64,000 nucleotides of DNA, from sequence record PV745554.1; one strand, written 5' to 3'. Positions 12,224-51,206 of the stretch are shown piece after piece. The position numbers and the translations under genes are program-made. The notes below the pieces were generated by a model. That model made no database searches. It saw only the letters and a list, made by a program, of their open reading frames with translations, and had not been told where the DNA came from. The first letter of the stretch is position 1. Each line of letters begins with the position of its first letter.

Positions 12224-12982
12224 GTGACCACGACCGCCGCCGACCTGCTCTTCAGCGCTCCAGATCGCTACGCCGCCTACGCGGCGCGCGAGGCCCTGGC
12301 GATGGCTCTGCATCATCAGACGCAGATTTCGCACATCGCCAGCACGCCCTACATGCGCGCGTCGGGCGGCGGCGGTTCGCCCTGCCCCACCCTCTGGACG
12401 CAACTGGCGCCCGAGAAGCGCGAGGAGTACCGCCAGATGGCGGATCGCTCCGTCGCCGAGCAGGCCGGCGATTCCACCGCCCTGACCAAGCACCAGAAGC
12501 GTAATCTGGAGGCCTGGGAGCGCGAGATACTGGCCCTGGCCGAAGGCCACGATCCCGACGGCTATTTCGACGCCAAGGACGACCGCGCCGGCAAGACCAT
12601 CGCCCAGCACTTCAAGCAGGAAGTGGCCTACGACCACAAGCTGGACGATAGTGATCTCCTCCAGGCCTGGGAGACCGCCGACAAGCTCGGGCTCCACCTG
12701 CCCGTCTTCCCAACCGACTATTTCGATCCGATCGTGGTCGAGAAGGTCGCCCGCCGGCAGTTGACCGAGTGGGAGGCCTCGATCATGGCCTTCAAGGTCA
12801 GCGCCTCCGTTAGCTCCTGGCCGGACTACCGGTTTGGCGTGCCGTTTGAGTTTCGCTTCACCCCCGAGGACGTCCAGGCCCACGAGCGGCACCTCATCAC
12901 GCCCGGCGCCATGGTCATCTCGACGCCGGCCATGACCGACGCCGACAAGGTCCGCTATGCCGGCGCCTGGGGCAAGGTCTGA
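12224..12982 (+). CDS. Hypothetical protein (GTG start)
   Basis: 252 aa; coding-like bias. Confidence 0.75.
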   Translation: MTTTAADLLFSAPDRYAAYAAREALAMALHHQTQISHIASTPYMRASGGGGSPCPTLWTQLAPEKREEYRQMADRSVAEQAGDSTALTKHQKRNLEAWEREILALAEGHDPDGYFDAKDDRAGKTIAQHFKQEVAYDHKLDDSDLLQAWETADKLGLHLPVFPTDYFDPIVVEKVARRQLTEWEASIMAFKVSASVSSWPDYRFGVPFEFRFTPEDVQAHERHLITPGAMVISTPAMTDADKVRYAGAWGKV

Positions 12983-13065
12983 TGGATCGTCTCGACCGCG
13001 TCATTCTCGCCGCCTTCGTCATCACCCTCGGCTGTTTCGCCGTTCAAGCCTGGATTCTCATCTGA
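12982..13065 (+). CDS. 27-aa membrane peptide
   Basis: TGATG overlaps on both sides; MDRLDRVILAAFVITLGCFAVQAWILI. Confidence 0.6.
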   Translation: MDRLDRVILAAFVITLGCFAVQAWILI

Positions 13066-13640
13066 TGAACCGTCGCAATTTCCTGACCGCCATCCTCGCC
13101 ACGCCCTTCATCAGCGCGATCGCGCCGGGCGCCCTGGCGGCGGGCCACAAGACCATCGACCTGGGCGGTCAGCCGCTCAGCGTCTCCTTCCTGAAGGAGA
13201 TCAGCCGCGAGCAGGGCGCGCTCGTGATGAACAAGCGCATGCGCAACCTTTTGTCGGCGTCGTCGCGCAATCCCGCGACGGAAGGCCAGATGGTCTGGGA
13301 CAAGAACGAGTTCGGCCAGCGCATCATGAAGCTGGGCGACGTCCCGATCATCCCCACCGACTACACGGGCGGCCCGGTCGTCCAGCAGGTCATCGACTTC
13401 GAAGGCCCCGAGGACGACCTGCGCACGGAAATCCTCGTCCTGTCGCCCGAAGCGGCCAAGCTGGCGCTGTCCTGGGAGACCGATTGGTCCAACCGCGTTG
13501 ACGCGGCGGGCATGACGGACACCAACGAGGGTCCCTATGACTACCGGGGCATGCCGGACGTCGCGGGCATCAACCTGCTCAAGAGCCGCTCCGACGTCCT
13601 TGTCCTCAAGGGCGTTCCGAAGAAGGCTCTGATCGCCTGA
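13065..13640 (+). CDS. Tat-signal-fused paralog of the C-terminal half of the major capsid protein
   Basis: N-terminus MNRRNFLTAILATPFISAIAPGALA; LVMNKRMRNLLSASSRNP...VWDKNEFGQRIMKLGDVPIIPTDY...QQVIDF aligns with MCP LIMSKRMRNLLAQSANNP...TWDKDEFGMRVMRYADLPILVTDY...QQVIDF. Confidence 0.85.
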   Translation: MNRRNFLTAILATPFISAIAPGALAAGHKTIDLGGQPLSVSFLKEISREQGALVMNKRMRNLLSASSRNPATEGQMVWDKNEFGQRIMKLGDVPIIPTDYTGGPVVQQVIDFEGPEDDLRTEILVLSPEAAKLALSWETDWSNRVDAAGMTDTNEGPYDYRGMPDVAGINLLKSRSDVLVLKGVPKKALIA

Positions 13641-13918
13641 TGCGCTTCTTCGGCTTCCTCCTCACCGTGGCCCTGGTCACCCTGCCATTCGCCCTGGCGG
13701 CGTGCGGCGGCCCGATCGAGACCACCGACAGCGTCATCGCCACCACCAAGGAAGGCTGCGCGGTCCACAAGATCGTCCGCCGCCAGGGCATGCTCTCCGA
13801 AGAGGTCTTCACGACCATCTGCCCGAACGGCGCGGCCCGCACCGAGTGGGAGACCACGCGCATGATCGGCAAGACGGTGACCACCGAAAAGCACGCTGTC
13901 GACACCCCGGCCCGCTGA
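13640..13918 (+). CDS. Putative lipoprotein
   Basis: Signal peptide with lipobox LAA-C; TGATG coupling. Confidence 0.75.
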   Translation: MRFFGFLLTVALVTLPFALAACGGPIETTDSVIATTKEGCAVHKIVRRQGMLSEEVFTTICPNGAARTEWETTRMIGKTVTTEKHAVDTPAR

Positions 13919-19626: not shown

Positions 19627-20367
19627 CTACTCCTTGAGATACCCGGCCTTGATCGCCTCGGCCCGCGTGTCGGCCTTGCTGAGAATCGTGTCGCCGCCCC
19701 GGCGGATGAACTTGACGCCCTCGTAAAGCTGGACCTCCAGCTTGCCGTCCATCTGGATGCGCCCCAGGCGCACCGGGCCGCCGGCGTAGGGCTCGGGCGG
19801 ATCGCCCACGCCGATCTCGATCATGCCCTTGTCGCTGGTCTGCACCAGGAGCGTGGCGTGCCCGCCGATCCACACCGGGTTCCAGATTTCGAGCCACATC
19901 GAGGCCCCGTCAGCGCCCGCGTCGCTCAGCCGGCGCGCCAGGGTCAGCGCGTAGTCCTCGCAGTCGCCGCAGAAGCCGTTTTCGGCGTAGAAATCGCTCC
20001 TCTGGTAGAGGATGTCGTCCGAAACGTAGGTGTAGTGGCTCCGAAGGGCCGAATCCTGCTCCGAAACCTCCGAAAACGTCAATTTTCGGCCGGTTTTTGC
20101 CTTGCAGAGCGGATTTTCGGTGAATTTTTGACAGAATTCAGTGATTCCGTCGATCGAGACCTCGACTTTGCCCCCGTAGTCGCGTTTTTCCTCGCCGGAC
20201 GCGGCGATCAGCTTGACTTGAGGGCAATGACCGGCGTCGCGGGCCGGCGCGGTGACGATCGGGACATCCTGGCCGCCGGCGACGACCTGATGGGCGCTCC
20301 AGGCGAACCAGCCGAGCGGCAGGAGCAGGCCGAGCGAGAAAAAGACGATCGCGATCCAGCGCCACAT
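19627..20367 (-). CDS. Membrane-anchored transglutaminase-like cysteine peptidase (BTLCP / peptidase C93-like)
   Basis: N-terminal TM helix; GDCEDYALTLARRL catalytic Cys motif; GGHATLLVQT His motif. Confidence 0.82.
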   Translation of the reverse strand: MWRWIAIVFFSLGLLLPLGWFAWSAHQVVAGGQDVPIVTAPARDAGHCPQVKLIAASGEEKRDYGGKVEVSIDGITEFCQKFTENPLCKAKTGRKLTFSEVSEQDSALRSHYTYVSDDILYQRSDFYAENGFCGDCEDYALTLARRLSDAGADGASMWLEIWNPVWIGGHATLLVQTSDKGMIEIGVGDPPEPYAGGPVRLGRIQMDGKLEVQLYEGVKFIRRGGDTILSKADTRAEAIKAGYLKE

Positions 20368-20802: not shown

Positions 20803-22710
20803 ATGGCCGGTCAGACTCCGAACTCCACGAACATCTCGCGGGTCGCCCGCGCGACCTCGCAGGCGATCTATCTGGTCACCCATCCCGAGTACCAATACTG
20901 GCGCCCGGAGTGGACGAAGCTGCGCGACGTGATGGCGGGGCAGCGCGAGATCAAGCGCAAGGCCGAAGCCTACCTGCCGGCCATGAAGGGCGCGGACGGC
21001 GACGACTACGCCATCTACCTCCAGCGCGCGACCTTCTTCAACATGCTGGCCCAGACCCGCGACGGCATGACCGGGATGGTTTTCCGCCGCGATCCGATCG
21101 TCAAGAACCTGCCGCCCAAGTTCAAGGACGCCGTGCGGCGCTTTGCCAAGGACGGCTCCTCGCACGCGACGTTCGCCAAGGCCGTGCTGTCCGAGCAGGC
21201 CGGCGTCGGCCGCTTCGGTGTCCTGGTCGACGTGGTCGACAATCCGCGCAAGGGCGCGGTCGCAACCAGCTTCGCCGTTGGCTACTCGGCCGAGAACATC
21301 CTCGACTGGGACGAAGTCGTCGACATGGGCGGCTTCTACGTCCCCAGCCGCGTCCTGCTGCGCGAATTCGTCCGCGACCTGCGCTGGAAGTCCGACATCG
21401 AGCCCCTGACCACCGCCCAGGCCCGCAAGGCGCGCGCGGCGGCCCTGGCCTCGGGTAGCGCCAGCAGCCCGATGGTCCGTCAGACCGCCCGCACCCTGGG
21501 CGGCTACAGCTACATCACCGTCTACCGGGAACTGAAGCTCGAAGAGATCGAGTGGCCGTCCGGCGAGGTCAAGCTCGCCTACGTCCAGTACCTCTACGAA
21601 GAGGACCCCGAGAGCCGGCCGATCGCCCGCATCGTCCCGACCGTCCGGGGCGAGCCGCTCGACTTCATCCCCTTCAAGTTCTTCGGCGCCTCGGGCAACA
21701 CCGCCGACGTCGAAAAGCCGCCGCTTCTCGACATCTGCGATCTGAACCTGTCGCACTACCGCACCTACGCCGAACTCGAATACGGCCGCCTGTTCACCGC
21801 CCTGCCGGTCTACTACGCGCCGGGCACCGACAGCGAGGGCACGGGCGAATACCACATCGGCCCGAACATGGTCTGGGAAGTGCCCCAGGGCTCCGAGCCG
21901 GGCATCCTCGAATACACGGGCCAGGGCCTGAAGGCGCTCGAAACCGCCCTCAACGACAAGGAGCGGCAGATCGCCGCGATCGGCGGCCGGATGATGCCGG
22001 GCGCCTCCAAGTCGGTCTCCGAGAGCAACAACCAGACCGTCCTTCGCGAGGCCAACGAGCAGTCGCTGCTCCTCAACATCATCCAGGCCTGCGAGTCCGG
22101 CATGACCGACGTCGTGCGCTGGTGGCTGATGTGGCGCGACGTGCCGCTGGCCGACACCGAGAACCTGCGCTACGAGGTCAACACCGACTTCCTGTCGACG
22201 CCGATCGGCGCGCGCGAGATGCGCGCCATCCAGCTTATGGCCAACGACGGCCTGCTGCCCGACCCGGTCTTCTACGAGTACATGCGCAAGGCCGAGGTCA
22301 TCTCGTCCGACATGACCTTCGAGGAATTCCAGGCCCTGCGCGCCGACGAGAACTCGTTCATCAACAACCCCGACGCCCAGGCCCGCCAGCGCGGTTACAC
22401 CAACCGTGGCCAGGAACTGGAGCAGTCGCGCATGGCGCGCGAAGCCGACTTCACCCAGCAGAAGATCGACATCCAGGAGCGCAGTGTCGCGGTCCAGGAA
22501 GGTCACGCCGAGGTGGCGCACGCCGCTGGCTCGACCTCGATCTCTGGCTCGCGCAAGCTGGGCGACCCCGAGCAGGCCAAGCCCGCCGTGGCCGATCAGG
22601 CAACCATCGACAACGCCAAGAAGCAGACGGCGAACGCGGCGAAGGTCGCCGCCCAGCCGCCGGCTCCGGCCGCGCCGGGCGCTCCGCCCACCAATCGTCG
22701 CCCGACCTGA
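20803..22710 (+). CDS. Portal protein
   Basis: 635 aa; HPEY...WTKLRDVMAGQREIK...YLP...YLQRATFFN N-terminus (DUF4055-type portal); head-module position. Confidence 0.85.
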   Translation: MAGQTPNSTNISRVARATSQAIYLVTHPEYQYWRPEWTKLRDVMAGQREIKRKAEAYLPAMKGADGDDYAIYLQRATFFNMLAQTRDGMTGMVFRRDPIVKNLPPKFKDAVRRFAKDGSSHATFAKAVLSEQAGVGRFGVLVDVVDNPRKGAVATSFAVGYSAENILDWDEVVDMGGFYVPSRVLLREFVRDLRWKSDIEPLTTAQARKARAAALASGSASSPMVRQTARTLGGYSYITVYRELKLEEIEWPSGEVKLAYVQYLYEEDPESRPIARIVPTVRGEPLDFIPFKFFGASGNTADVEKPPLLDICDLNLSHYRTYAELEYGRLFTALPVYYAPGTDSEGTGEYHIGPNMVWEVPQGSEPGILEYTGQGLKALETALNDKERQIAAIGGRMMPGASKSVSESNNQTVLREANEQSLLLNIIQACESGMTDVVRWWLMWRDVPLADTENLRYEVNTDFLSTPIGAREMRAIQLMANDGLLPDPVFYEYMRKAEVISSDMTFEEFQALRADENSFINNPDAQARQRGYTNRGQELEQSRMAREADFTQQKIDIQERSVAVQEGHAEVAHAAGSTSISGSRKLGDPEQAKPAVADQATIDNAKKQTANAAKVAAQPPAPAAPGAPPTNRRPT

Positions 22711-32722: not shown

Positions 32723-32821
32723 AAGAGAATTCCCTCGGTGACTGCCGGTCGACCGAGGGACAGACCGAGACGGGGTCCGTCTCTCAACACGGCCGGCGCG
32801 AACACCAAAAGGAGCAAGCCA

Positions 32822-33757
32822 ATGGCTGCTGTGACCCTGCTGCAAGCGTCCGAAATGGCGCTCGGCAACGACGAAGTCAAGCGCGCCGCGATCATCGAGC
32901 TTTTCGCGACGCCCGACATCCTGCGCGTGATCCCGTTCCTGGACATCCAGGGCGGCGCGTACACCTACCTGCAAGAAGGCCAGCTCTCGGGCGTCGCCTT
33001 CCGGGGCATCAACGAGTCCTACGACACGTCGACCGGCGTGATCAACCCGCAAGTCGAGCGCCTGCGCATCGTCGGCGGTGACCTGGACGTCGACAAGGCC
33101 CTGCTGAAGACCCACGGCGCCAACGTCCGCTCGCAGCAGGAGCGCATGAAGGTCAAGGCTCTGAGCCTGTACCTCGCCGGCAAGATCGTCAACGGCGACT
33201 CGGAAAACGACCCGCGTGAGTTCGACGGTCTGCGCAAGCGCATCACCGGCTCGCAACTCTTCCCGGCCGGCAACACCTCGGGCGGCGACGCCCTGTCGCT
33301 GGCCGTCCTGGACGAAGCCATCGACGCGGTCGACGGTGCGACGCACCTGATCATGTCGAAGCGCATGCGTAACCTGCTCGCGCAGTCGGCCAACAACCCC
33401 AACGTCACCGGCTACGTGACCTGGGACAAGGACGAGTTCGGCATGCGCGTCATGCGCTACGCCGACCTGCCGATCCTGGTGACCGACTACGACGACAAGA
33501 ACCAGCAGGTCATCGACTTCAACGAAGCCAACCCCGGCGGTGGCGCCGCTGTCGGCACCTCGATCTACGTCGTCAACATCGGCGACGAAGGCGTGGTCGG
33601 CCTCCAGAACGGCATCATGGAGATCGAAGACCTCGGCGAGATCGACGCCAAGCCGGTTCTGCGTACCCGCGTGGAATGGCTGGTTTCGCTGGCCGTCCTG
33701 AGCGGCCGTGCTGCCGCTCGCGTCTGGGGCATCAAGAAGGCCGCTGTCACCCGCTAA
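32822..33757 (+). CDS. Major capsid protein (HK97 fold)
   Basis: 311 aa; AGGAG RBS; very strong codon bias; VAFRGINESY...LRIVGGDLDVD...EFDGLRK motifs; position after scaffold. Confidence 0.9.
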   Translation: MAAVTLLQASEMALGNDEVKRAAIIELFATPDILRVIPFLDIQGGAYTYLQEGQLSGVAFRGINESYDTSTGVINPQVERLRIVGGDLDVDKALLKTHGANVRSQQERMKVKALSLYLAGKIVNGDSENDPREFDGLRKRITGSQLFPAGNTSGGDALSLAVLDEAIDAVDGATHLIMSKRMRNLLAQSANNPNVTGYVTWDKDEFGMRVMRYADLPILVTDYDDKNQQVIDFNEANPGGGAAVGTSIYVVNIGDEGVVGLQNGIMEIEDLGEIDAKPVLRTRVEWLVSLAVLSGRAAARVWGIKKAAVTR

Positions 33758-38682: not shown

Positions 38683-41600
38683 TTGGTCGATCTCGTCGCC
38701 GGCACGCCCGCTTCCGTTGCCTATTCCGGCAGCGCGGTGGAGTATGTCGTCAAGGCTGCGGGTCAGGTCGACATCTACCTGTGGGGTGGCGCGGGCTCGG
38801 GCGGCTACTATGCCAACGGTTCGGGCAACGCCAACAAGTTCGGCGGCGCGGGCGGCTACACCAATGCCCGCTTCATGGTCGATGTCGGCGACATCATCAC
38901 CGTCGAGGTGGGCCAGGGCGGGCGCGTCCCGACCGGCTCGGGCACCACCGCGTCTGCCGGTGGCCTGGGCGGCTGGCCTGATGGCGGCTTCGGGGCGATC
39001 AACTCTGGCGCGGCTTGGGTTGCTCCTGGCGGCGGCGGCGGTTCGACCCGCATCTATAAGAACGGCGATCTGGTCGCCGTCGCGGGCGGCGGCGGCGGCG
39101 CCACGGGCTTCTACAGCGGCGGCAACGGCGGCGGCGCGCTCGGCATGGCGTCGACCGACGCCTCGTCCGGCGCGGGCGGCACGCAGCTTGCCGGCGGCGT
39201 GGCCGGCTCGGGCACGCTGGCTGTCCAGTCCGGCGGCTACTTCCGGGGCGGTCAAGCCAGCACCGCCGCGAACGTCTCCAACGCCTACACGGGCGGCGGC
39301 GGCGGCGGCGGCTTCTATGGCGGCGCGTCCAACGGCGGCGGCTCGGGCGCGCACGGCTCGGGCGGCGGCGGCTCGGGCTGGCTGTCCCAGGCCACCGACG
39401 TCGCGGGCGCGTGCCGTGTTGCGCCGCAGGACGGCACGGGCGCTCCGATCAACCCGGCGGGCATCACCATTCCGGCCGGCACCGCGCAAGGCGGGGTCGG
39501 CCCCACGGTCGCAAGCACGGGCTGGGCCTCGATCACGCCGGGCGGCAACGGCTTTGCCTACCTCGCCCTGACCGACATCGGGGCCACGGCCTCGGCCCTG
39601 CCGTCGGGCAGTAGCACGCTCAGCTATACCGGAACCCGGCAGGTCTACGAGGTCACCGACATCTGCTCGGTCGACTTCGAGATGTGGGGCGGCGGCGGCG
39701 GCGGCGGCTTCTATACCTCTGGCGGCAACGCCGCGCGCTTCGGCGGCGCGGCCGGCTACACCAAGCTCACCCGCATCCTCTATCCGGGCGACATCGTCGA
39801 GGTCGAGGTCGCCCAGGGCGGTCAGGCCCCGAGCGGCGTCAGCCAGACCGGCGGCGCGGGCGGCTGGCCCAATGGGGGCTCCGGCGGACGCCCGGCGGCG
39901 GCGGCGCCCAACTTTGGTGGCGGCGGCGGCTCGACCAACGTCTGGGTCAACGGACGTCTGCTGGCGATCGCGGCCGGCGGCGGCGGCTCGACCGGCTTCT
40001 ACTACGGCGGTGTGGGCGGCGGGCGCTTTGGCCTCCAGTCGACCGACCAGACGACCAACAACGGCACCGGCGGCACCTGGGGCGGCGTCAACGCGGTCAG
40101 CAGCCAGGGTCGCGGCTATTTCCTGCAAGGCGGCCACGGCTCGCCGATCGAATCCCCGACCGTCGCGATCGCCACGGCTGGCGCGGGCGGCGGCGGCGGC
40201 TATTACGGCGGCGGGGGCGCCAAGGGCGGCTCGGGCACGCACGGCTCGGGCGGCGGCGGCTGCGGCTACACCTCGGGCGATAACACCTACAACCGCGTTA
40301 TGCAGGCGGGGACGCCTGCCACCGGCGCGCCCTACGATCCGGGCACCAAGCCGGCTGGCGTGGGCGTGGGCGGAACGGGCGGCTCGTCGGCTGGCACCAC
40401 CGGCCCTGGCGGCGACGGTGCGATCAACCTGACCGTCACCCCCCTGACGAGTCTGCCGACCCTGCCGACTGGCAAGACGGTCTTCAGCTTCACCAACGCG
40501 GCTGAGCATTACGTCGCCGGAACCACGGGCCTGATGGCCCTGAAGGTCTGGGGCGCGGGCGGTGGCGGCTGCACGCGCTCGTCTGGCACGCTGCGGCGCG
40601 GCGGCGGCGGCGGCTTCTTCAAGGTCGACATCGTCAAGATCAACCAGGGTGACATCGTCACCTTCGTGGTCGGCGAGGGCGGCAAGGGCATGCCCGGCCC
40701 GAACCTGGGCGGACGCGGTGGCTTCCCGAACGGCGAATACGGCAACGCCGGCGACGCCACGGGTGGCAACGCCGGCGGCGGCGGCTCCTCCCACGTCTAC
40801 ATCAACGGCAAGCTTGTTGGGGTCGCGGGTGGCGGTGGCGGTGGCGCGATCTCGTTCGACGGCGGCACGGCGGGTCTGGCGTCCTATCCGCCCAGCGGCT
40901 ACGGCTTTGGCCCCTCCGGCTCGTCCCTCTTCTATGGCGGCTTCTCGCCCCAGCGCGGCGCGGAAGGCAACAACCGTGGCGTCTTTATGCTGGCCGGCAT
41001 CGGTCAGATTGACGGCGGCACGATCGACACGCCCAACAACCTCGCGGGCGGCGGCGGTGGCGGCGGCTACTGGGGCGGCGCCGGCTCGGCGCCCAACAAC
41101 TCCCGCTTCCAGCCCGGCGGCCCTGGCTCCACCTACATCACCGCCAACTATGTGGGCACCCAGCAGGCGGGCACCACCAGCGGCACCAACCTGTCCGATC
41201 CCGATTGGGGGTCCTCGGCCAGCGTGGGTGGCCAGGGCTCTAACACGCCCGGCAACTCCGTCACCAATGGTGGGCACGGGCGCATCGTCTGCTCGTTCGA
41301 CATCCCGACTCTGCTGAACGAAAGCGTCAGCGCCAACGTCCCCGTGGCCTCGGCGGTCCAGACCTTCATGGTCGGCAACGACGGCACCATCACGCTCAAG
41401 GCCTGGGGCGCGGGCGGCGGCGGCTCGATGATGACCGCCAACAGCGGCTCGGAACTGGCCGGCGGCGGCGGCTATGCGGCGGCGACGCTCGACCTCAAGA
41501 AGGGCCAAATCCTGCGCGTCTATAACGGCGCGGGCGGCAATGGCGCGGTCTATACCAGCGGCGTCTCTGGGGCCTTCGTTGGCACCGGCGGTCCCGGCGG

Positions 41601-44600
41601 CTGGCCCGATGGTGGTCAGGGCGGCATGCACGTCTCGGGCATCTTCGGCGGCGGCGGCGGCTCCTCGCGCGTCTATGTCGACGACATCCTGCTTCTGGTC
41701 GCGGGCGGCGGCGGCGGCGGCGGCATCCATACGGCCACGACCACCGCCGGCGGCGGCGGTGGCACGACGGGCGGCAACTCCGACACCGTCACGGTCTTCA
41801 ACACCGGCGGCCAGACCTATCGCGGCGGCTGGAACACCGGCCGCACGACCGACGCGACCACCTCGGGCAGCGGTTTCAAGGGCGGCGCGGGCTATCTGGC
41901 AGGCAGCACGGCCTCGACCAGCAACATCGCCCATGGTGGCGGTGGCGGCGGCGGCCTCTATGGCGGTTCGGGCTCCGGTTCCACCAACGCCTCCTCGACC
42001 GGCTGGCTGGGCGGCGCCGGCGGCTCGGGCTTCGTCGCGGACGGCTGGGACGTCACCGAGTACGACTACCTGCGCGACTACGTGGTCTTGCAGTATAGCT
42101 TCGACACGCCCAGCGGCGTGGCCGACGATGCGCGCAAGCTGAACACCCTGCTGCTCAATACGGCCCCGACGACGACGACCTCCGGCCCGAAGTTCGGCAC
42201 CACCTGCCTGACCATGTCTGCCGGCCACTTGACGACGGACATCCCGGCGATCGGCCAGCAGGACTTCACCCTGGAAGGTTGGTTCAACCCCGCGTCCTTG
42301 ACGACCGGGGTCATGATGATCATCGGGGACCAGAGCATCAACGGCCTGTCCCTGCACTACTACCCCTCGGCCACGGTCCTGGGCCTGCGGTACAACAACG
42401 CCGATCCCTCGGGCGCCACGCTCGACACCAAGTACACCGACTCTGCGCGCGCCGCCAACGTCTGGGCGCACTATGCGATCTCGCGCGACATCAACGGCAC
42501 GCGCGTCTACAAGGACGGCATCCTCGTCTCGACGACGACCGGCTCGCCGTTCTCGATCACCGCCACCACCCTGACCCTGGGCAACTACCGGTCGATCGCG
42601 GGGGCCAGCACGCGCTTCGTCGGCAAGATCGACGAGGTGCGCCTGACGGTGGGTGTCGCCCGCTACCGCCAGAACTTCAAGCCCCAGCAGTTCCGCAACA
42701 AGCGCACCCTGGGCCTGACGGGTGCGAGCACGGTCCAGGCCGGCAGCAGCGGCAACGGCCTGCCGGCCTCCACGGGCGTCTCGGGCTATGCCGCCGGTCG
42801 CGGTGTCGGCGCGGCCGTCAAGACCACGCCCGCCAATGGCAACCCTGGCGGCGACGGGCAGATCAACTATTTCCTGGCGACCTCGACGGTCGCGGCGACG
42901 GGTCCGATCGGCACCGTCCAGGTCGGTGGACTGATCACGGCCGCCGCCGGCGCCTTCTATCCGCTGCCGGCGGCCGGCACCACCGTCGTCCATCCCTATA
43001 CCGGCTCGCGCTACAACTACTCGGTCGACGATCCGGGTGGGGCGCGCATCAAGGTCGAGATGTGGGGCGCGGGCGGCGGCGGCTGCTCGGCGACCAACTC
43101 CAGCACCTCGACGGGTGGCGGCGGCGGCGGCTATACCGTCTACGAGATGGACCTTGTCCAGGGTGACAAGATCACGCTCCAGACGCCGTCCGGGGGCTTC
43201 GGCTCCAACACCGCCGGCGGCAGCGACGCCTCGGGCATCAATGCCGGCGGCTATCCCGACGGTGGCAACGGCTATCGCCCCGCCTTCACCGCGTTCAACG
43301 GCGGCGGCGGCGGCTCTGCGCGCATGTGGGCGGGCGGCGATCTGGCGGCCGTGGCGGGCGGCGGCGGCGGCGGCGCCTATGGCTCGGTCGCCTATGACTT
43401 CGCGGGCGGCCCCGGTGGCGGTTCGTCGGGCGGCTCGGGTGGCTACGACGGCGTCAACGCGACCTTCCCCAACACCGGCGGCACCCAAAGCGTCGGTGGC
43501 ACGGGCACGCCCAACGGTGTCTCGGGCTCGTTCATGCAAGGCGGCGTGGGCGGCACCACGATCAGCGTCGCCAACAACGGCCCCGGCGGCGGCGGTGGCT
43601 ATTACGGCGGCGGCGGCGGCGGCGCCTACAAGGCGGCCGGCGGCGGCTCGGGCTACATCAACACCACCCTGAGCGGCTATCGCACCGGCTCGACCTCGGG
43701 CGGCTCGGGCAACCTGCCGGGCGGCATGGGCTCGCCCAACTACGCCTCGGGCATCGGGGTCGGTTCGAACGGCAAGGCGGGCGTTCGCGTCGGCGGCAAC
43801 GGCCGGATCGTCCTGACGGTCATCACGCCCACGCCCGGCAACGCCGCCGGTCTGATCGGCACCGTCAACGTCTCGGGCCTGAACACCTTCGGCACCCTGG
43901 TCGGCACCCCGACCGGCGCGATCGGCACGGTCAATGTCGTCGTCCCGGTCGGCACGTCCGGTCAGCCGGCCTTTGCGTCGGGCGTCCTGCCGGTCATCGG
44001 GCTGGGTCCGCCCGAGACGATCCCGCAGGCCCAGGCGATCGTCATCGTTCCGATCAACGACCAGACCTCGCTCCTGGTCAGCCCGCCCGATCACGCGCCG
44101 TTCGCCATCGACGCCGAGGGCACGGGTGATCTGGGCACGATCACCGTCACGTCGTTCAACTCGACCCAGACGGCCGCCGCCAACGCCACCCCCGCCCTGC
44201 CGACGGTCACGCTCACCGCGCCCGAGGCTGACGCGGTCGAAATCCCGCCGGTCCTGGCGTCGGGCGCGCTCGTCACCATCCCGGTCACCGCGCCCGAGGC
44301 GTCCACCCAGGTCATCCCCCCGGTCGAGACCAGCGGCGACATCGGCACGATCACGCTCGTCACGCTCAACGGCGACGCCTCGACCAACAACAACGTCGCC
44401 ACCTCGGGCGACATCGGCACGATCACGCTCACCGCGCTGGATGGCAGCGCCCAGGGTGATGATCTGGCCGAGGGCCTGATCGGTACGATCACGGTCACCG
44501 TCCCCACGGCGGTCGTTCAGCAGAGCGCCGAGGCGACCGGCGACATTGGCACCATCTCGGTCTACGCGATCGAAGGGGGTCAACCGGCTGACGCCAGCGG

Positions 44601-47100
44601 CGACATCGGCACGATCCAGATCGTCCCGCTGGGCGTCTCGGTCAACGCCAGCAGCGGCGACGACGTCAACCTCTACGTCGATCCGGGCCTGATCTATGTC
44701 GTGGCCCCGTTCGGCCAGGGCTTCTGGATTTCCGAGGACAACTTCGTCCACGCCCTGCCCGATCCGCTGGTCGTGTCGGTCACCACGCCGACCGGCAGCG
44801 CGCGCGGCGACGTGCGCATGGTCGGCTCGTTCGCGCCGATCATCCTGTCCAAGCTGGATGGATCGGCTGGCGGCGACGGCCTCGCCGAGCCCTATACGGG
44901 CGACTGGATCATCCTGGTCTCGCCGCCGGTTCCGCAAACGGAACTGAACGCCAACGTCAACGTGGCGATGCCGCCGCCGATCGTCATCAACGGCAACGAC
45001 GCGGAAGCCTCGCTCGACATCACCGTGCCGTTCAGCGACACGGCGGTGTTCATCACCGGCCCCGAGGCGTTGGGTCTGGGCTTCCACGGCGGGCAACTGG
45101 GTCCGCCGATCCTGGTCACGCCCCCGGCGGGCGGCCCGGAGATCAGCGCCAACGGCATCGGCCAGATCGGCACGATCGGCGTTGAGCCGCCGCGCTTCCA
45201 CTACATCCCGCCGATCACCGTCATCCCGCCCGAAGGCGTGGCGCTGGACGCCAAGTCGGCCCAGGCCTCCGGCTCGCTGGGCACGATCACCATCGGCGTG
45301 CCGACGGGCGGCTATCAGGCCGCTGTCGCCATCAACCTGCCGCTGCCGACGATCTTCGTCACCACGCCGCAGGCCATGGTCTTCGCCTCGGTCGCCATCA
45401 GCGGCGCCCTGAGCACGATCACGCTCACCCCGCCCGTCGCCAGCCTGACGGCCGGCGCGAACGCGTCCTTCACTCTGCCCGGTCCCATCGTCCTGACCTC
45501 GCCCGAGGCGACGGCGACGGCCGGCACGGCGGCCTCGACCTCCGGCGCACTGACCACCATCACCCTGACGGCGCCGACTGGTTCGGTCGCGACCGGCAGC
45601 GCCGCCTCGGCCACCGGCTCGATCGGCACGATCACGGTCACGCCGTTCGACGGCAGCGTCTTCATCTCCTACCCCGGTTTTGCCACGGGCGCGATCGGCA
45701 CGATCACCCTGACGCCGCCGGCCGCGACCGTCAGCAACGGCCGTAACCTCTCGCTCGCTTTCCCCGGCCCGATCGTCGTCACCTCGCCGGTCGCCGTACC
45801 GCGCGGCTCGGTCGCCATCACCGGCACCATCGGCACGATCACGCTCACCGCGCCCATCGGCACGGCGACCGGCGACACCATCTTCGGCACCGGCGACATC
45901 GGCACGATCACCGTCACGGGGATCAATGGCGCGGCGACCGGGCGCGGCCTGGGCACGGGCGCGATCGGCACGATCGTCGTCACCCCGCCGGCCGCGACGC
46001 TCACCACCGGCGCCAACAAGTCCGTCGCCCTGCCCGGCCCGATCGTCGTCACCGCCCCGACGGGCGTGGGCCGCGTGCCCAGCGCTACCTCGGGCGCGCT
46101 CGGCACGATCACGATCACCAGCACGCCCGAGGCTACGGTCTCGGCCGGGCAGGGTCTGTCGGGTCAGATCGGCACGATCACGATCACCCCGCCCGAGGCG
46201 CAAGGCCAGGGCGCGGTCTTCATCCAGGCGACCGACGAACTCGTCGTTCAGACCCTGCCGCCGCAGGCGATCCTCTTCCAGGAAGCCACGGTCATCGTCG
46301 GCTTCCCGACGATCTACCTTGTCGCGCCCGAGGCGATCACCTACTCGCTGGCCGAGTTCGCCTCGATCACCCTGCTGCCGCCGGACGCCTATGTGACCGT
46401 GCCGCTGCCGCTGGGCAAGAACCGCATCCGCTATCGCCGCAACAACACGGCGGGACATGCGCCCGCGAGCCTGCTGCCCCACGAGATCGCGCTGAACGAG
46501 ACCGACGGCCTGCTGTTCACCCGCGACGGCGCGGGCGCGGTCAAGTCCACGCCGCTGGGCTTCATGCACGGCGAAGGCCTTCCGCCGCCGGCCACCGACG
46601 ATGGCAAGGTGCTGTCGGGCGGGATGTCCTGGGAGACGCCGTTCACCCAGTACCTGCTCCCGGTCCGCAACGCCCCGCCGGCCGGCGCGCGCATCGCCCT
46701 GGCCGAGGGCGTGGTCGGCACCACGACCTTCACGCCGACGCTCGACGTCACCTACACCCGTCCGTTCTTCGTGGCCAAGACCATCGACATCCAGGCGCTG
46801 TCGATCGAGGTCGTGGGCACCGCCGTCTCGACGGCCGAACTGGGCCTGATCGGCTGGTCGCTCACCGGCACGCCGGGCGCGGCGATCGTCACCGGCACGG
46901 TCAGCACCAGCACGGCGGGCGTCAAGTCCGCCGCCGGCACGGCCACGGTCTTGACGCCGGGCTGGTACGCCGCCACCTTCAAGGTCACCGGCGCGGCGGG
47001 GGCTTCGTTCCGGGCTCCCACCACCCCGACGGCGATCGCGCCGGACTTCACCACCGCGCCGGGCGCGCCCGCGCCGGTCATGGCGACCCTGGAGACCTAA
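38683..47100 (+). CDS. Giant Gly-rich fibre / receptor-binding-like protein (2805 aa) with a LamG-like domain
   Basis: Five Gly-rich modules opening with (L/M/V/A)WG(G/A)xG; lectin-like FTLEGWF...WAHYAISR...GKIDEVRLTVGVARY; many ASGxIGTITxTxP repeats. Confidence 0.85.
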   Translation: MVDLVAGTPASVAYSGSAVEYVVKAAGQVDIYLWGGAGSGGYYANGSGNANKFGGAGGYTNARFMVDVGDIITVEVGQGGRVPTGSGTTASAGGLGGWPDGGFGAINSGAAWVAPGGGGGSTRIYKNGDLVAVAGGGGGATGFYSGGNGGGALGMASTDASSGAGGTQLAGGVAGSGTLAVQSGGYFRGGQASTAANVSNAYTGGGGGGGFYGGASNGGGSGAHGSGGGGSGWLSQATDVAGACRVAPQDGTGAPINPAGITIPAGTAQGGVGPTVASTGWASITPGGNGFAYLALTDIGATASALPSGSSTLSYTGTRQVYEVTDICSVDFEMWGGGGGGGFYTSGGNAARFGGAAGYTKLTRILYPGDIVEVEVAQGGQAPSGVSQTGGAGGWPNGGSGGRPAAAAPNFGGGGGSTNVWVNGRLLAIAAGGGGSTGFYYGGVGGGRFGLQSTDQTTNNGTGGTWGGVNAVSSQGRGYFLQGGHGSPIESPTVAIATAGAGGGGGYYGGGGAKGGSGTHGSGGGGCGYTSGDNTYNRVMQAGTPATGAPYDPGTKPAGVGVGGTGGSSAGTTGPGGDGAINLTVTPLTSLPTLPTGKTVFSFTNAAEHYVAGTTGLMALKVWGAGGGGCTRSSGTLRRGGGGGFFKVDIVKINQGDIVTFVVGEGGKGMPGPNLGGRGGFPNGEYGNAGDATGGNAGGGGSSHVYINGKLVGVAGGGGGGAISFDGGTAGLASYPPSGYGFGPSGSSLFYGGFSPQRGAEGNNRGVFMLAGIGQIDGGTIDTPNNLAGGGGGGGYWGGAGSAPNNSRFQPGGPGSTYITANYVGTQQAGTTSGTNLSDPDWGSSASVGGQGSNTPGNSVTNGGHGRIVCSFDIPTLLNESVSANVPVASAVQTFMVGNDGTITLKAWGAGGGGSMMTANSGSELAGGGGYAAATLDLKKGQILRVYNGAGGNGAVYTSGVSGAFVGTGGPGGWPDGGQGGMHVSGIFGGGGGSSRVYVDDILLLVAGGGGGGGIHTATTTAGGGGGTTGGNSDTVTVFNTGGQTYRGGWNTGRTTDATTSGSGFKGGAGYLAGSTASTSNIAHGGGGGGGLYGGSGSGSTNASSTGWLGGAGGSGFVADGWDVTEYDYLRDYVVLQYSFDTPSGVADDARKLNTLLLNTAPTTTTSGPKFGTTCLTMSAGHLTTDIPAIGQQDFTLEGWFNPASLTTGVMMIIGDQSINGLSLHYYPSATVLGLRYNNADPSGATLDTKYTDSARAANVWAHYAISRDINGTRVYKDGILVSTTTGSPFSITATTLTLGNYRSIAGASTRFVGKIDEVRLTVGVARYRQNFKPQQFRNKRTLGLTGASTVQAGSSGNGLPASTGVSGYAAGRGVGAAVKTTPANGNPGGDGQINYFLATSTVAATGPIGTVQVGGLITAAAGAFYPLPAAGTTVVHPYTGSRYNYSVDDPGGARIKVEMWGAGGGGCSATNSSTSTGGGGGGYTVYEMDLVQGDKITLQTPSGGFGSNTAGGSDASGINAGGYPDGGNGYRPAFTAFNGGGGGSARMWAGGDLAAVAGGGGGGAYGSVAYDFAGGPGGGSSGGSGGYDGVNATFPNTGGTQSVGGTGTPNGVSGSFMQGGVGGTTISVANNGPGGGGGYYGGGGGGAYKAAGGGSGYINTTLSGYRTGSTSGGSGNLPGGMGSPNYASGIGVGSNGKAGVRVGGNGRIVLTVITPTPGNAAGLIGTVNVSGLNTFGTLVGTPTGAIGTVNVVVPVGTSGQPAFASGVLPVIGLGPPETIPQAQAIVIVPINDQTSLLVSPPDHAPFAIDAEGTGDLGTITVTSFNSTQTAAANATPALPTVTLTAPEADAVEIPPVLASGALVTIPVTAPEASTQVIPPVETSGDIGTITLVTLNGDASTNNNVATSGDIGTITLTALDGSAQGDDLAEGLIGTITVTVPTAVVQQSAEATGDIGTISVYAIEGGQPADASGDIGTIQIVPLGVSVNASSGDDVNLYVDPGLIYVVAPFGQGFWISEDNFVHALPDPLVVSVTTPTGSARGDVRMVGSFAPIILSKLDGSAGGDGLAEPYTGDWIILVSPPVPQTELNANVNVAMPPPIVINGNDAEASLDITVPFSDTAVFITGPEALGLGFHGGQLGPPILVTPPAGGPEISANGIGQIGTIGVEPPRFHYIPPITVIPPEGVALDAKSAQASGSLGTITIGVPTGGYQAAVAINLPLPTIFVTTPQAMVFASVAISGALSTITLTPPVASLTAGANASFTLPGPIVLTSPEATATAGTAASTSGALTTITLTAPTGSVATGSAASATGSIGTITVTPFDGSVFISYPGFATGAIGTITLTPPAATVSNGRNLSLAFPGPIVVTSPVAVPRGSVAITGTIGTITLTAPIGTATGDTIFGTGDIGTITVTGINGAATGRGLGTGAIGTIVVTPPAATLTTGANKSVALPGPIVVTAPTGVGRVPSATSGALGTITITSTPEATVSAGQGLSGQIGTITITPPEAQGQGAVFIQATDELVVQTLPPQAILFQEATVIVGFPTIYLVAPEAITYSLAEFASITLLPPDAYVTVPLPLGKNRIRYRRNNTAGHAPASLLPHEIALNETDGLLFTRDGAGAVKSTPLGFMHGEGLPPPATDDGKVLSGGMSWETPFTQYLLPVRNAPPAGARIALAEGVVGTTTFTPTLDVTYTRPFFVAKTIDIQALSIEVVGTAVSTAELGLIGWSLTGTPGAAIVTGTVSTSTAGVKSAAGTATVLTPGWYAATFKVTGAAGASFRAPTTPTAIAPDFTTAPGAPAPVMATLET

Positions 47101-49028: not shown

Positions 49029-49104
49029 GTCGGTCTAGCTCATGGGGTAGAGCGGCGGTCTCCAAAACCGCGCGTGGCAGGTTCGAGTCCTGCGTCCGGC
49101 GCCA
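49029..49104 (+). tRNA. trnW: tRNA-Trp(CCA)
   Basis: Cloverleaf; GCGGT-CTCCAAA-ACCGC; TTCGAGT T-loop; encoded CCA. Confidence 0.92.
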
Positions 49105-49108
49105 TTTC

Positions 49109-49183
49109 GCATCCGTAGTATATAGGTGATTACAGCGCGTTGCCAACGCGTAGAGTCGGGTTCGAGTCCCGACGGATGCTCCA
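49109..49183 (+). tRNA. trnG: tRNA-Gly(GCC)
   Basis: GCGCG-TTGCCAA-CGCGT; acceptor GCATCCG/CGGATGC; CCA. Confidence 0.92.
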
Positions 49184-49187
49184 TTTC

Positions 49188-49261
49188 GCGGGTATAGCTC
49201 AAAGGGAGAGTTGCTGCCTTCCAAGCAGAAGATGCGAGTTCGAGCCTCGCTATCCGCTCCA
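49188..49261 (+). tRNA. trnG: tRNA-Gly(TCC)
   Basis: CTGC-CTTCCAA-GCAG; CCA. Confidence 0.92.
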
Positions 49262-49555
49262 ACCTCGTGGTGAGGTGAGAACGCCCTCCTCATGCACCGC
49301 TTCGGCGGTAAAGTAGGCTCCAGCCGAAGAGATGCGGGACCAGGGGACCCCGCCACCACGAACGAAGTGCGCCCCAGGTACGCCTCTGACCGAGAAAGCC
49401 CGCTGGCCGTGGGTGAAGTGTATGGTCAAGCGTCTGGGTCCCCGTCCGCCAGGACCGGCGAAGGCCATATGCGCCGAATTCCTGGACCGGATCGTAGGAG
49501 GGGAGCGTTGGCGCCGGCCCAGCAGGGAAGGGTGAAGAGCCCAGCCGGCAATTTT
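49262..49555 (+). ncRNA. Candidate structured non-coding RNA
   Basis: No credible ORF; ACCGC-TTCG-GCGGT hairpin; GGGGACCC/GGGTCCCC long-range pair; CCAGGA/TCCTGG stem. Confidence 0.35.
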
Positions 49556-49569
49556 CTTCAACAACAAGC

Positions 49570-49598
49570 TTGACAGCCGTCGAGTTTCGTGAGAGCCT
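49570..49598 (+). promoter_or_regulatory. tRNA sub-operon promoter 1
   Basis: TTGACA-17nt-GAGCCT; near-identical layout to the promoter at 50186. Confidence 0.72.
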
Positions 49599-49608
49599 CC
49601 TCAACATT

Positions 49609-49671
49609 ATGACGCACCTCCTCACCCGTTACGAACGCGAGGCCACCGGCCTCGATACCACCACCGCCTAA
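49609..49671 (+). CDS. Putative leader peptide 1 (MTHLLTRYEREATGLDTTTA)
   Basis: Starts ~4 nt after the predicted TSS; carries GAA, GAG and GAT codons upstream of tRNA-Glu and tRNA-Asp; overlaps alternative hairpins. Confidence 0.55.
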   Translation: MTHLLTRYEREATGLDTTTA

Positions 49672-49703
49672 AAGCGGTTTTGGTCCGAGGCCTCTTGTGA
49701 TGT

Positions 49704-49781
49704 GGCCCGGTCGTCTAGCGGTTTGCAGGATTCCTGACTTTCAATCAGGAGAGCGGAGTTCGAGTCTCCGTCGGGCTTCCA
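49704..49781 (+). tRNA. trnE: tRNA-Glu(TTC)
   Basis: CCTGA-CTTTCAA-TCAGG; CCA. Confidence 0.92.
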
Positions 49782-49806
49782 CACCCCCAACTCATCTCTG
49801 AGCTTT

Positions 49807-49881
49807 GGTGCCGTCGTATATGGGTTATTATCACCGGCTGTCTCCCGGTGGAAACGGGTTCGAGTCCCGTCGGCATCGCCA
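49807..49881 (+). tRNA. trnD: tRNA-Asp(GTC)
   Basis: ACCGG-CTGTCTC-CCGGT; acceptor GGTGCCG/CGGCATC; CCA. Confidence 0.92.
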
Positions 49882-49944
49882 GCCCTCGCAGCAAATCCAG
49901 GTTCCAGCGCGGCTGTTCCGCGCGCCTGCATGCACGAGGCTACC

Positions 49945-50166
49945 ATGTTTTTCGATCCCTCCTCGCAGTCGAGCGACGCGCTCCTGCGCCACGTCTCCAC
50001 CCAATCTCCGTATGCGGAAGCGGCTCGCACCGAGTTGCTGTCCCGAGGCCTCGTTCCGCTCCTGACGCGGTTCAACGGCTGGCGCCTCGCCCCGAGCGCG
50101 CCGTTTCCGCAGCACCTCATCCCGCGCCCCGATCCGCTCGCGAAGTACACGTGGCGGGCGGGATGA
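49945..50166 (+). CDS. Hypothetical protein within the tRNA cluster
   Basis: GAGG RBS; 73 aa. Confidence 0.55.
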   Translation: MFFDPSSQSSDALLRHVSTQSPYAEAARTELLSRGLVPLLTRFNGWRLAPSAPFPQHLIPRPDPLAKYTWRAG

Positions 50167-50185
50167 AAAATATTCACCACGACGC

Positions 50186-50214
50186 TTGACATCCGTCGGG
50201 AGTTGTGAGAGCTT
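50186..50214 (+). promoter_or_regulatory. tRNA sub-operon promoter 2
   Basis: TTGACA-17nt-GAGCTT. Confidence 0.75.
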
Positions 50215-50307
50215 ATGGACTGTCACGGATCACGACACTCCTCGGAGTGCAAAAGCGTGATCCTTCGTTTTTCACGGCCGCCAGCGGGTGGCCAGTCGAG
50301 AGTTGTC

Positions 50308-50445
50308 ATGTTCGCCTTGTCGCATCTCAGCCTGAGCACGAAAGCCGCCTCCCCGGCGACGCTTTCGCTTGCCCTGCTGGCGACGGCCGCGAAGCCCTCG
50401 ACCAAGCCGACCACCTCGGCCTCGCACTCGACGGAGACCCACTAG
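50308..50445 (+). CDS. Leader peptide 2 (45 aa; 42 codons are A/L/S/H/T/K/P)
   Basis: MFALSHLSLSTKAASPATLSLALLATAAKPSTKPTTSASHSTETH; the residue set equals the downstream tRNA set. Confidence 0.85.
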   Translation: MFALSHLSLSTKAASPATLSLALLATAAKPSTKPTTSASHSTETH

Positions 50446-50547
50446 GGCTCTCGTCTCGGGTGCAGGCCTTGGAGCCGCACCCGCTACCTACATCCTGTAG
50501 ACCTAGCGCAAGGCGGCTCCTCACCAGGGAGACCGCCTTTTCTTTTT
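50419..50547 (+). promoter_or_regulatory. Attenuator 2 (alternative hairpins plus terminator)
   Basis: Hairpin 50419-50467 around the stop codon; CGGGTGC/GCACCCG (50457-50483); antiterminator GGAGCCGC(50471-78):GCGGCTCC(50513-20); terminator 50510-50547. Confidence 0.82.
50510..50547 (+). terminator. Rho-independent terminator between leader 2 and its tRNA operon
   Basis: AAGGCGGCTCC...GGAGACCGCCTT followed by TTCTTTTT. Confidence 0.88.
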
Positions 50548-50559
50548 CGCGTTGATCAT

Positions 50560-50635
50560 CGGGGTGTAGCTCAGTCGGTAGAGCGCTCGGTTCGGGACCG
50601 AGAGGCCGTGGGTTCGAGTCCCGCCACCCAGACCA
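50560..50635 (+). tRNA. trnP: tRNA-Pro(CGG)
   Basis: CTCGG-TTCGGGA-CCGAG; CCA. Confidence 0.93.
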
Positions 50636-50642
50636 ACGCCAT

Positions 50643-50719
50643 CGGGATGTAGCTCAGTTTGGGAGAGCGCGCGGCTGGGGGCCGCGAGGCCGCAGGTTCA
50701 AGTCCTGCCACCCCGACCA
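50643..50719 (+). tRNA. trnP: tRNA-Pro(GGG)
   Basis: CGCGG-CTGGGGG-CCGCG; CCA. Confidence 0.93.
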
Positions 50720-50724
50720 ACAAC

Positions 50725-50797
50725 GCTGTTGCGCGTGGCTTCGCGCCCACCCCTTGGTATGGGGCGGTAGAAGGTTCAATTCCTTCCAGCAGCACCA
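50725..50797 (+). tRNA. trnT: tRNA-Thr(GGT), atypical D-arm
   Basis: CCCC-TTGGTAT-GGGG; acceptor GCTGTTG/CAGCAGC; TTCAATT T-loop; CCA. Confidence 0.78.
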
Positions 50798-50802
50798 ACA
50801 AC

Positions 50803-50872
50803 GCCGATGCCTCTGGGAGGACGCGCCTTTCGTAAGGGTGCGAGGTGGGTTCAATCCCCACTTTCGGCTCCA
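50803..50872 (+). tRNA. trnT: tRNA-Thr(CGT), short D-arm
   Basis: CGCCT-TTCGTAA-GGGTG; CCA; 70 nt. Confidence 0.78.
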
Positions 50873-50927
50873 TCAAACAGCCTGCGGGCTATATCGGAGA
50901 TCAAGTTTCATAGCCTCCAGGCTATAT

Positions 50928-51014
50928 GGATGTGTCACCTCAGTGGCGAGAGGAACGGGCTCTTAATCCGTCAGCGCAAGCTCACCGTGGGTTCGAGTCC
51001 CACCACATCCTCCA
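50928..51014 (+). tRNA. trnK: tRNA-Lys(CTT) with long variable arm
   Basis: ACGGG-CTCTTAA-TCCGT; acceptor GGATGTG/CACATCC; 87 nt. Confidence 0.88.
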
Positions 51015-51019
51015 ACAAT

Positions 51020-51109: not shown

Positions 51110-51112
51110 TGT

Positions 51113-51199: not shown

Positions 51200-51206
51200 A
51201 CGACAT

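Follow-up and report, generated by a model that had tools for sequence, protein, structure and literature searches.

The window analysed here by computational means, 64,000 nucleotides of sequence record PV745554.1, is the left 64 kb of the genome of Caulobacter phage BL64 (100% identity), a phiCbK-like jumbo siphophage whose host serves as a model organism in the laboratory. A gene on its plus strand (13065..13640, stop codon included) codes for a 191-amino-acid protein, in which a predicted signal of the twin-arginine translocation (Tat) type precedes a domain homologous to the A-domain of the phage major capsid protein (MCP). In an earlier note, made from the sequence alone, the protein was described as a Tat-exported copy of the C-terminal half of the MCP, encoded 19 kb from the head genes between a membrane peptide and a lipoprotein. 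The location was confirmed. The MCP gene lies 19.2 kb downstream, and the 191-amino-acid protein gene is outside the structural module. It is preceded by a gene for a 27-amino-acid membrane peptide (MDRLDRVILAAFVITLGCFAVQAWILI; 12982..13065, plus strand), whose stop overlaps its start, and is followed by a gene for a 92-amino-acid lipoprotein (13640..13918, plus strand; lipobox L-A-A-C, phrog_902), whose start overlaps its stop. The three genes are thus chained by ATGA stop/start overlaps. On the plus strand, no terminator-like sites were found from a strong one at 10267-10293 up to 17 kb, other than a weak five-pair match at 11087.

The closest match to the 191-amino-acid protein is gp023 of phage CcrRogue (AFU86505.1 / YP_006989052.1), which is 99.5% identical at the amino acid level and is encoded at the same position, with the same neighbours. 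In GenBank, RefSeq, and UniProt, gp023 is labelled "putative TAT signal protein", a name that records the signal alone and makes no mention of capsid homology. In the CcrRogue genome paper, the word "TAT" does not occur, and the capsid homology of gp023 is likewise unmentioned. Among 50,697 phage records, full-length matches were limited to BL64 and CcrRogue; all remaining matches were MCPs, aligned over residues 34-112 only. The gene is sporadic (2 of 39 Caulobacter phage matches).

Comparison of the BL64 and CcrRogue genes revealed nine synonymous substitutions and one non-synonymous substitution. The resulting ratio of non-synonymous to synonymous rates (dN/dS) of 0.035 was the lowest among seven neighbouring genes. 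We conclude that the gene is real and is under strong purifying selection; on the basis of this value and of intact distant homologs, a pseudogene was rejected. Compared with phage RBC8, the gene amounts to a precise indel of 576 bp that lies between two CTGATG repeats, and in RBC8 the stop of the membrane peptide gene overlaps the lipoprotein gene start directly. In phage BL10 (CcrBL10, locus L003), a different 31-amino-acid membrane open reading frame (ORF; MPKTLPGRIAAVIIALAVGGFAGYLTGLAFR) occupies exactly the same slot. The flanks are mosaic, the upstream gene resembling that of RBC8 in BL64 and that of BL10 in CcrRogue. Both flanking genes, for the membrane peptide and the lipoprotein, occur in relatives that do not have the 191-amino-acid protein gene, which is absent from RBC8, RBC11, RBC63, BL10, and phiCbK. 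It forms a dispensable cassette of a single gene, which BL64 and CcrRogue possess and their nearest relatives lack. As a side observation, the slot is a hot spot at which small envelope-protein genes are swapped between ATGA overlaps.

The predicted N-terminal signal

Residues 1-25 (13065..13139, plus strand) were read from the sequence as a Tat-type signal peptide, with a putative cleavage site in front of A26. The N-terminus (MNRRNFLTAILATPFISAIAPGALA, followed after the putative site by AGHK) begins with MNRRNFLT. The motif N-R-R-N-F-L spans residues 2-7, with the arginine codons at 13071-13076, and provides a polar residue and R-R-x-hydrophobic-hydrophobic close to the N-terminus. After RR-x-F-L come 24 consecutive uncharged residues, and A23-L24-A25 stands in front of A26 (A-L-A before A), so that an uncharged, moderately hydrophobic h-region and a small-x-small site are also found. 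All three elements listed in the earlier note, the Tat-like motif, the hydrophobic core, and the ALA site, are therefore present. The best 12-residue Kyte-Doolittle window of the h-region scored 2.02, versus 2.43 for the signal of the adjacent lipoprotein and 2.73 for the upstream membrane peptide; lower hydrophobicity of the h-region is typical of Tat signals. Over the six frames of the GC-rich window, there were 1,894 candidate starts, of which only four fitted a loose Tat-like pattern; besides the gene itself, these were three antisense ORFs. We therefore conclude that the motif is not an artefact of base composition. The only family models that matched the N-terminus were Tat-signal models, both below threshold. 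In the AlphaFold model (see below), residues 1-26 appear disordered (predicted local distance difference test, pLDDT, below 50).

An origin of the signal from the N-arm of the MCP was suggested by a MAFFT alignment, in which ..LATPFISAIAP was paired with ..FATPDILRVIP. This origin was rejected: the MCP profile has no N-terminal match in the 191-amino-acid protein, and in full-length paralogs the signal lies ahead of an intact N-arm (..PTS-MTLLQMA..).

Homology to the major capsid protein and predicted structure

The genuine MCP of BL64 (32822..33757, plus strand; 311 amino acids) is of the epsilon15 gp7 type of HK97 fold (phrog_212, E-value 1e-85; NF045672, MCP_gp7_epsi_15, E-value 7.5e-65). 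Residues 33-128 of the 191-amino-acid protein (13161..13448, plus strand) correspond to MCP residues 153-253, the A-domain core, as revealed by tblastn, an MCP profile, hhalign, and AlphaFold. In a tblastn search within the window, residues 34-112 were 51% identical to the BL64 MCP (E-value 2e-19); a profile built from 17 MCPs matched residues 33-113 (E-value 2e-21); and hhalign aligned the entire core with 99.3% probability. Motifs LVMNKRMRNLL, WDKNEFGQR, DVPIIPTDY, and QVIDF are kept in the core. Residues 129-165 (13449..13559, plus strand) have no detectable similarity to the MCP and are predicted to contain a long helix (128-148) in place of the MCP P-domain beta hairpin. The C-terminal tail, residues 166-191 (13560..13637, plus strand), can be aligned with the C-terminus of the MCP, including the final A-domain strand and the GxxKxxxxA end, but this alignment of the last ca. 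26 residues (..LLKSRSDVLVLKGVPKKALIA versus ..VLSGRAAARVWGIKKAAVTR in the MCP) is obtained only once family relatives are included. Every motif pair given in the earlier note was found in the alignments; the alignment with MCP residues ca. 160-311 that it proposed holds for residues 33-128 and the last ca. 26 residues and fails for residues 129-165.

No Pfam or NCBIfam model, those of MCPs included, matched the 191-amino-acid protein, and no MCP family model was matched over most of the length of the model; phrog_212 matched the protein over profile positions 148-225 of 301 only (E-value 9.5e-8). Neither the MCP profile nor a profile of the fragments matched a solved structure by sequence. The core is 45% identical to the MCP of BL64 itself and about 42-49% identical to other MCPs of the phiCbK group. 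Since the core is no closer to the phage's own MCP than to the others, the protein is not a copy of half of that MCP, as had been supposed, and a recent duplication was rejected; only the A-domain core is kept. In a separate observation, phrog_31318 (147 positions, unknown function) matched residues 188-333 of the MCP ORF at 32738..33754 (E-value 6.6e-10), that is, residues 160-305 of the 311-amino-acid MCP, and did not match the 191-amino-acid protein. There is therefore a further family of short proteins with a likeness to the C-terminal half of the MCP.

An AlphaFold model of the 191-amino-acid protein, calculated with a 17-sequence alignment as input, had a mean pLDDT of 75.6 and a predicted template modelling (pTM) score of 0.75, with a compact alpha/beta domain beyond residue 26. 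The model of the BL64 MCP (mean pLDDT 66) was poorly predicted in its N-terminal third and contained a long spine helix at residues 92-124. With an offset of ca. +123, secondary-structure elements of the MCP and the 191-amino-acid protein pair one for one up to residues 250 and 126, respectively: helix 160-169 with helix 40-47, strand 175-178 with strand 52-56, helix 180-190 with helix 57-66, and strands 199-203, 209-213, 216-220, and 244-251 with strands 76-80, 86-90, 93-98, and 120-126. The final strand of the MCP (298-304) pairs with strand 178-185. The P-domain strands of the MCP (258-292) are replaced by helices 128-148 and 166-174. All confident Foldseek matches of the model were HK97-fold proteins; the best were family 2 encapsulins (E-value 2e-4, probability 1.0, TM-score ca. 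0.40), and phage MCPs in BFVD were also matched with probability 1.0. When normalised to the query, TM-scores were only about 0.37-0.45. The alpha/beta core of the A-domain is thus recovered by hhalign, AlphaFold, and Foldseek alike. According to the alignment and the two models, the protein is an HK97-fold A-domain core from which the N-arm, the E-loop, and the spine helix are absent and in which the P-domain sheet is replaced. As these are the elements of lattice contact, we take it that the protein cannot join a capsid lattice.

Signal-bearing paralogs of the major capsid protein

Relatives were collected by a word-indexed search, a profile search run exhaustively against 1.84 billion representatives, and two further searches. 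Including the BL64/CcrRogue protein, 15 signal-bearing MCP paralogs were found, eight of them full-length (CcrColossus gp036, BL57 gp025, and six metagenomic proteins) and seven fragments of 157-214 amino acids. The earlier note would have given up its reading if homologs lacked the RR motif; ten of the 15 carry RR-x-hydrophobic-hydrophobic, and K-R, with the second arginine kept, is found in the five that remain, so that the reading was not refuted on this count. The word-indexed search yielded the fragment P0002 (196 amino acids, 49% identical, MDRRSFLT..), encoded on a contig that looks phage-like and carries small genes. Profile searches added the fragments P0003 (214 amino acids, MDRRSFLS..), P0008 and P0013 (157-159 amino acids, ..LTKRGLF.. 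or ..LTKRALL..), P0142 (157-159 amino acids, ..LTKRALF..), and P0151 (200 amino acids, MDLTKRGVL.., on a 266-kb contig), as well as the full-length proteins P0006 (MNRREVFKLGG..AQA), P0007 (MPTRRDMM..), P0009 (MNRRNFLTV..), P0010 (MHRRDLLKT..), P0011 (MNRRSFLL..), and P0051 (MKLTKRGFFKG..). Two full-length members come from cultured phages: CcrColossus gp036 ((M)QRRNFFKSLL..) and BL57 gp025 (MNRRTFFRSV..), the latter at 12.4 kb, in a left-arm variable region shared with the BL64 gene. One scan of species-representative genomes revealed no relatives, and a scan of metagenome contigs revealed true MCPs only.

In full-length members, the N-terminal signal stands ahead of a complete MCP, with an E-loop region shortened by ca. 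17-25 residues in five of the eight. When the seven full-length RR members are aligned, R3 and R4 are invariant, and the identity of the mature parts to the first aligned sequence is 35-48%. Over the whole set, the mature parts are only 30-57% identical, and the RR or KR pair, the uncharged stretch, and the small-x-small site are kept. P0009, which has the same MNRRNFLT start as the BL64 protein, passes the Tat model TIGR01409 (17.6 bits, cut-off 16.7); P0003, P0006, and P0010 are just below the thresholds of the Tat models. In hydrophobicity, the h-regions are surpassed by the Sec/Lol signal next door and by the membrane peptide. A normal, signal-less MCP is also encoded by Colossus, BL57, BL64, CcrRogue, and the 266-kb contig of P0151 (P0041). 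The presence of such a second MCP could be checked for the cultured carriers and this contig, most other metagenomic members being on short contigs. We propose to define the group as MCP-derived proteins with an RR or KR signal that are encoded apart from a normal MCP; BL64, Colossus, BL57, and the P0151 contig all have this arrangement.

Gene 36 of Colossus has been noted only as a diverged, translocated duplicate of the MCP, 21 kb upstream of the MCP (Gill 2012, PMC3556154), and its product is labelled 'major head protein' in RefSeq. A tblastn search also indicated two MCP-like places each in CcrPW, CcrBL9, and the Brevundimonas phages Kabachok and Papperlapapp, and further MCP paralogs in cultured jumbo phages are therefore probable. 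The first 45 kb of CcrPW contain no second MCP-like place; a gene of the BTLCP family (see below) is present there, and no gp036 homolog. Independently, we observed that in the annotated product of BL57_023 (L049, 11238-12125) the last third becomes an Arg/Pro-rich tail; it looks like a frameshifted fusion of a gp021 homolog with downstream sequence.

Colossus gp036 adjoins gp037 (L005:3535-4176, minus strand), a lipoprotein of the BTLCP/Peptidase_C93 family (LapG-like transglutaminase-fold cysteine peptidases), the two genes being oriented divergently from the portal gene. The BL64 homolog of gp037 (19627..20367, minus strand), which has an N-terminal membrane or signal segment, is likewise divergent from the portal gene (20803..22710). 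On the contig of P0151 (L059; GCA_030012885.1 JASCQV010009068.1, 266 kb), a run of genes at 2760-9965 beside the portal gene begins with a signal-less MCP paralog that is split, one ORF being at 2760-3221 and the other at 3274-3837. Next come three RR-signal genes in a row, which have no relationship to the MCP and two of which are paralogous; after them lie the KR-signal fragment P0151, membrane peptides, and genes of the Trypsin_2 and Peptidase_C93 families with signals of their own. The run looks like a cluster of exported proteins of an uncultured jumbo phage. Both neighbourhoods suggest that these phages group genes of exported proteins, MCP paralogs among them.

In a phylogenetic tree based on ca. 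120 shared columns, a single clade held all fragments and most of the full-length paralogs that bear a signal, and this clade was nested among MCPs of the phiCbK group (support 93/87 and 87/90). The 191-amino-acid protein is thereby placed among signal-bearing MCP paralogs of greater age. In the approximately unbiased (AU) test, a single origin was not rejected for the signal-bearing set (p 0.17) or for the fragments (p 0.46); independent truncations of the fragments are neither shown nor ruled out by the latter value. Because the signal is shared and the genomic region is shared with BL57, the 191-amino-acid protein probably descends from a full-length signal-bearing MCP paralog. Most likely, the N-terminal half of such a paralog was lost; an example of the parent type is BL57 gp025.

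Interpretation and alternatives

The best explanation of the data is that the 191-amino-acid protein is an accessory, non-structural phage protein composed of a minimal HK97-fold A-domain and a twin-arginine signal. The proposal of the earlier note is partly supported: the protein is a capsid-derived domain behind a predicted export signal, and its gene belongs to a variable, non-structural region that contains genes of envelope proteins. With moderate confidence, we interpret the sequence as that of a Tat-exported periplasmic A-domain that was reduced from a signal-bearing MCP paralog and acts in the envelope. The protein would fold in the cytoplasm, as capsid domains do, and would be moved in the folded state through the inner membrane by the host TatABC. 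Signal peptidase I would then cut after A-L-A (residue 25), leaving a soluble periplasmic protein of ca. 166 amino acids, unable to become part of a capsid lattice. The use of Tat rather than Sec would be sensible, since the domain has been selected for fast cytoplasmic folding.

Several observations weigh against this interpretation. The N-terminus alone scores 11.4 bits with TIGR01409 (cut-off 16.7) and 12.6 bits with PF10518 (cut-off 22.7), and neither model matches when the whole protein is used, so that the curated cut-offs are not reached. Five relatives have K-R instead of R-R, and some members may therefore use Sec. No partner gene is conserved across the paralog loci. With an AU p value of 0.17, the test does not reject one common origin of all signal-bearing paralogs, which falls short of showing it. 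Since the core of the protein is as close to true MCPs (45-49% raw identity) as to signal-bearing paralogs (33-48%), the grouping in the tree, obtained from ca. 120 columns of fast-evolving sequences, could partly be due to long-branch attraction.

Of the competing explanations, the one that survives best, although we consider it unlikely, is that the N-terminus does not export the protein or is not cleaved. The protein would then be cytoplasmic or tethered to the inner membrane, where, as a dominant-negative piece of MCP, it might disturb the capsid assembly of related phages in a co-infection or might modulate assembly of the phage's own heads. The most conserved motifs of the MCP core are kept, the signal is below the curated Tat cut-offs, and signal-less MCP paralogs occur too (the split paralog in L059 and P0012), all of which would fit such a role. 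On the other hand, the RR or KR pair, the uncharged stretch, and the small-x-small site are retained over 15 proteins whose mature parts have diverged to 30-57% identity; all lattice contacts (N-arm, E-loop, spine helix, and P-domain hairpin) are missing; and the closest relatives, with the same type of head, do without the gene.

A still less probable alternative keeps export and changes either its purpose or its route: the protein would serve as a decoy for capsid-sensing host defences, the idea named first in the earlier note, or would leave the cytoplasm via Sec. Its descent from an MCP agrees with a decoy, and the K-R variants leave the pathway open, but RR-x-F-L and the low hydrophobicity of the h-region favour Tat over Sec, and PADLOC gave no matches. 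To our knowledge, capsid-sensing defences act in the cytoplasm. A decoy is the least likely of the proposed functions because such sensors are not known outside the cytoplasm, whereas the protein is built to exit the cytoplasm and is devoid of most MCP surfaces.

We regard it as very improbable that the protein is a minor virion component (at a vertex, as decoration, or as an anchor of the head filament) with a processed assembly signal at its N-terminus: it is capsid-derived, and processed MCP forms are present in phiCbK heads (Gill 2012, PMC3556154), but its gene is 19 kb away from the structural module, with genes of small envelope proteins around it, and is absent from RBC8, RBC11, RBC63, BL10, and phiCbK, and the N-terminus has the shape of a classical signal peptide. 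Equally improbable is a decaying, functionless remnant of a duplicated capsid gene, for which the sporadic occurrence (2 of 39 Caulobacter phage matches) and the broken MCP paralog in L059 could be cited, given the dN/dS of 0.035, the full length and signal of the 49%-identical P0002, the intact ORFs in seven fragment clusters, the confidently predicted compact fold, and the translational coupling of the gene in an operon.

As to the function of an exported A-domain, a superinfection-exclusion or entry-blocking factor is our leading guess, which is weakly held and made by analogy: the variable early-region setting, with lipoprotein and membrane peptide genes, resembles that of superinfection-exclusion genes. 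The periplasmic A-domain might bind either an envelope component or a component of virions that come in; binding to virion parts that reach the periplasm is plausible since the A-domain derives from a virion protein. Nothing in the data is specific to superinfection exclusion, and no known defence or anti-defence model, including the PADLOC defence models, was matched. A broader idea, which we put forward only tentatively from the sequences, is that the paralogs of phiCbK-like and related uncultured jumbo phages form one family of Tat-exported HK97-fold proteins that work in the periplasm, ranging from complete through E-loop-less to a bare A-domain. Their jobs may include, for example, excluding or sensing superinfection by binding virion parts or ejected head proteins, or forming capsomer-like rings on the envelope.

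Other features of the window

Downstream of the MCP gene, a giant ORF for 2,805 amino acids (38683..47100, plus strand) lies in a stretch of 70-72% GC. Its product, with 21% glycine, probably corresponds to the protein of head-filament type that has been described in phiCbK. In antisense, a frame of 3,043 codons is open as well, which is an effect of composition. A cluster of 24 tRNA genes is located at 49029..53479 (plus strand).

Comparison with known proteins and implications

With the phiCbK-type MCP (phiCbK gp68; BL64 32822..33757; PF20911 / NF045672 / phrog_212), the 191-amino-acid protein shares the A-domain core of helix-strand-helix, four strands, and a final strand, at 45-51% identity over ca. 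80-95 residues. It differs from the MCP in having a signal peptide, in being encoded outside the head module by a dispensable gene, in lacking the N-arm, E-loop, and spine helix, and in the replacement of P-domain strands by helices. CcrColossus gp036 and BL57 gp025 are also MCP-derived and carry an RR signal, and their genes lie in variable regions at a distance from the MCP gene; unlike the 191-amino-acid protein, they keep the whole fold (321-339 amino acids). Encapsulins, the cellular HK97-fold shells that gave the best solved-structure matches, are another case of a capsid fold used outside virions, but they are complete shell proteins assembled in the cytoplasm, whereas the BL64 protein consists of one domain and a predicted export signal, and the TM-score between them is only ca. 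0.40. Superinfection-exclusion and other envelope accessory proteins of phages include T4 Imm/Sp and T5 Llp. These are likewise small, signal-bearing products of variable, non-essential genes in clusters with lipoprotein and membrane-peptide genes; the likeness would be one of mode of action only, with no relationship in sequence or fold.

That CcrRogue gp023 has a Tat-like signal and that Colossus gene 36 resembles the MCP are both already on record, separately from each other. In the literature and annotations, we found nothing that joins a Tat signal with MCP likeness, nor any description of signal-bearing capsid paralogs or of reduction to an A-domain. What is new is that, by sequence comparison, the 191-amino-acid protein is not a one-off and is a member of a family of signal-bearing MCP paralogs that had escaped notice.

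Capsid proteins are seen as building blocks that stay in the cytoplasm, and where the HK97 fold is known to serve other ends, as in encapsulins, it is cytoplasmic as well. If our interpretation is true, a conserved set of capsid paralogs with export signals, in phages that retain a normal capsid gene, would mean that the HK97 fold has been recruited to the cell envelope; if the paralogs do work as a periplasmic family, a protein of capsid fold would for the first time be seen to work outside the cytoplasm. Judging from the series of reduced forms, the A-domain is the part that does the work. For jumbo Caulobacter phages, the paralogs would add to the evidence for a battery of proteins exported to the periplasm, including RR-signal proteins, LapG-like peptidases, and proteases, with possible roles in host takeover, exclusion, or persistence.

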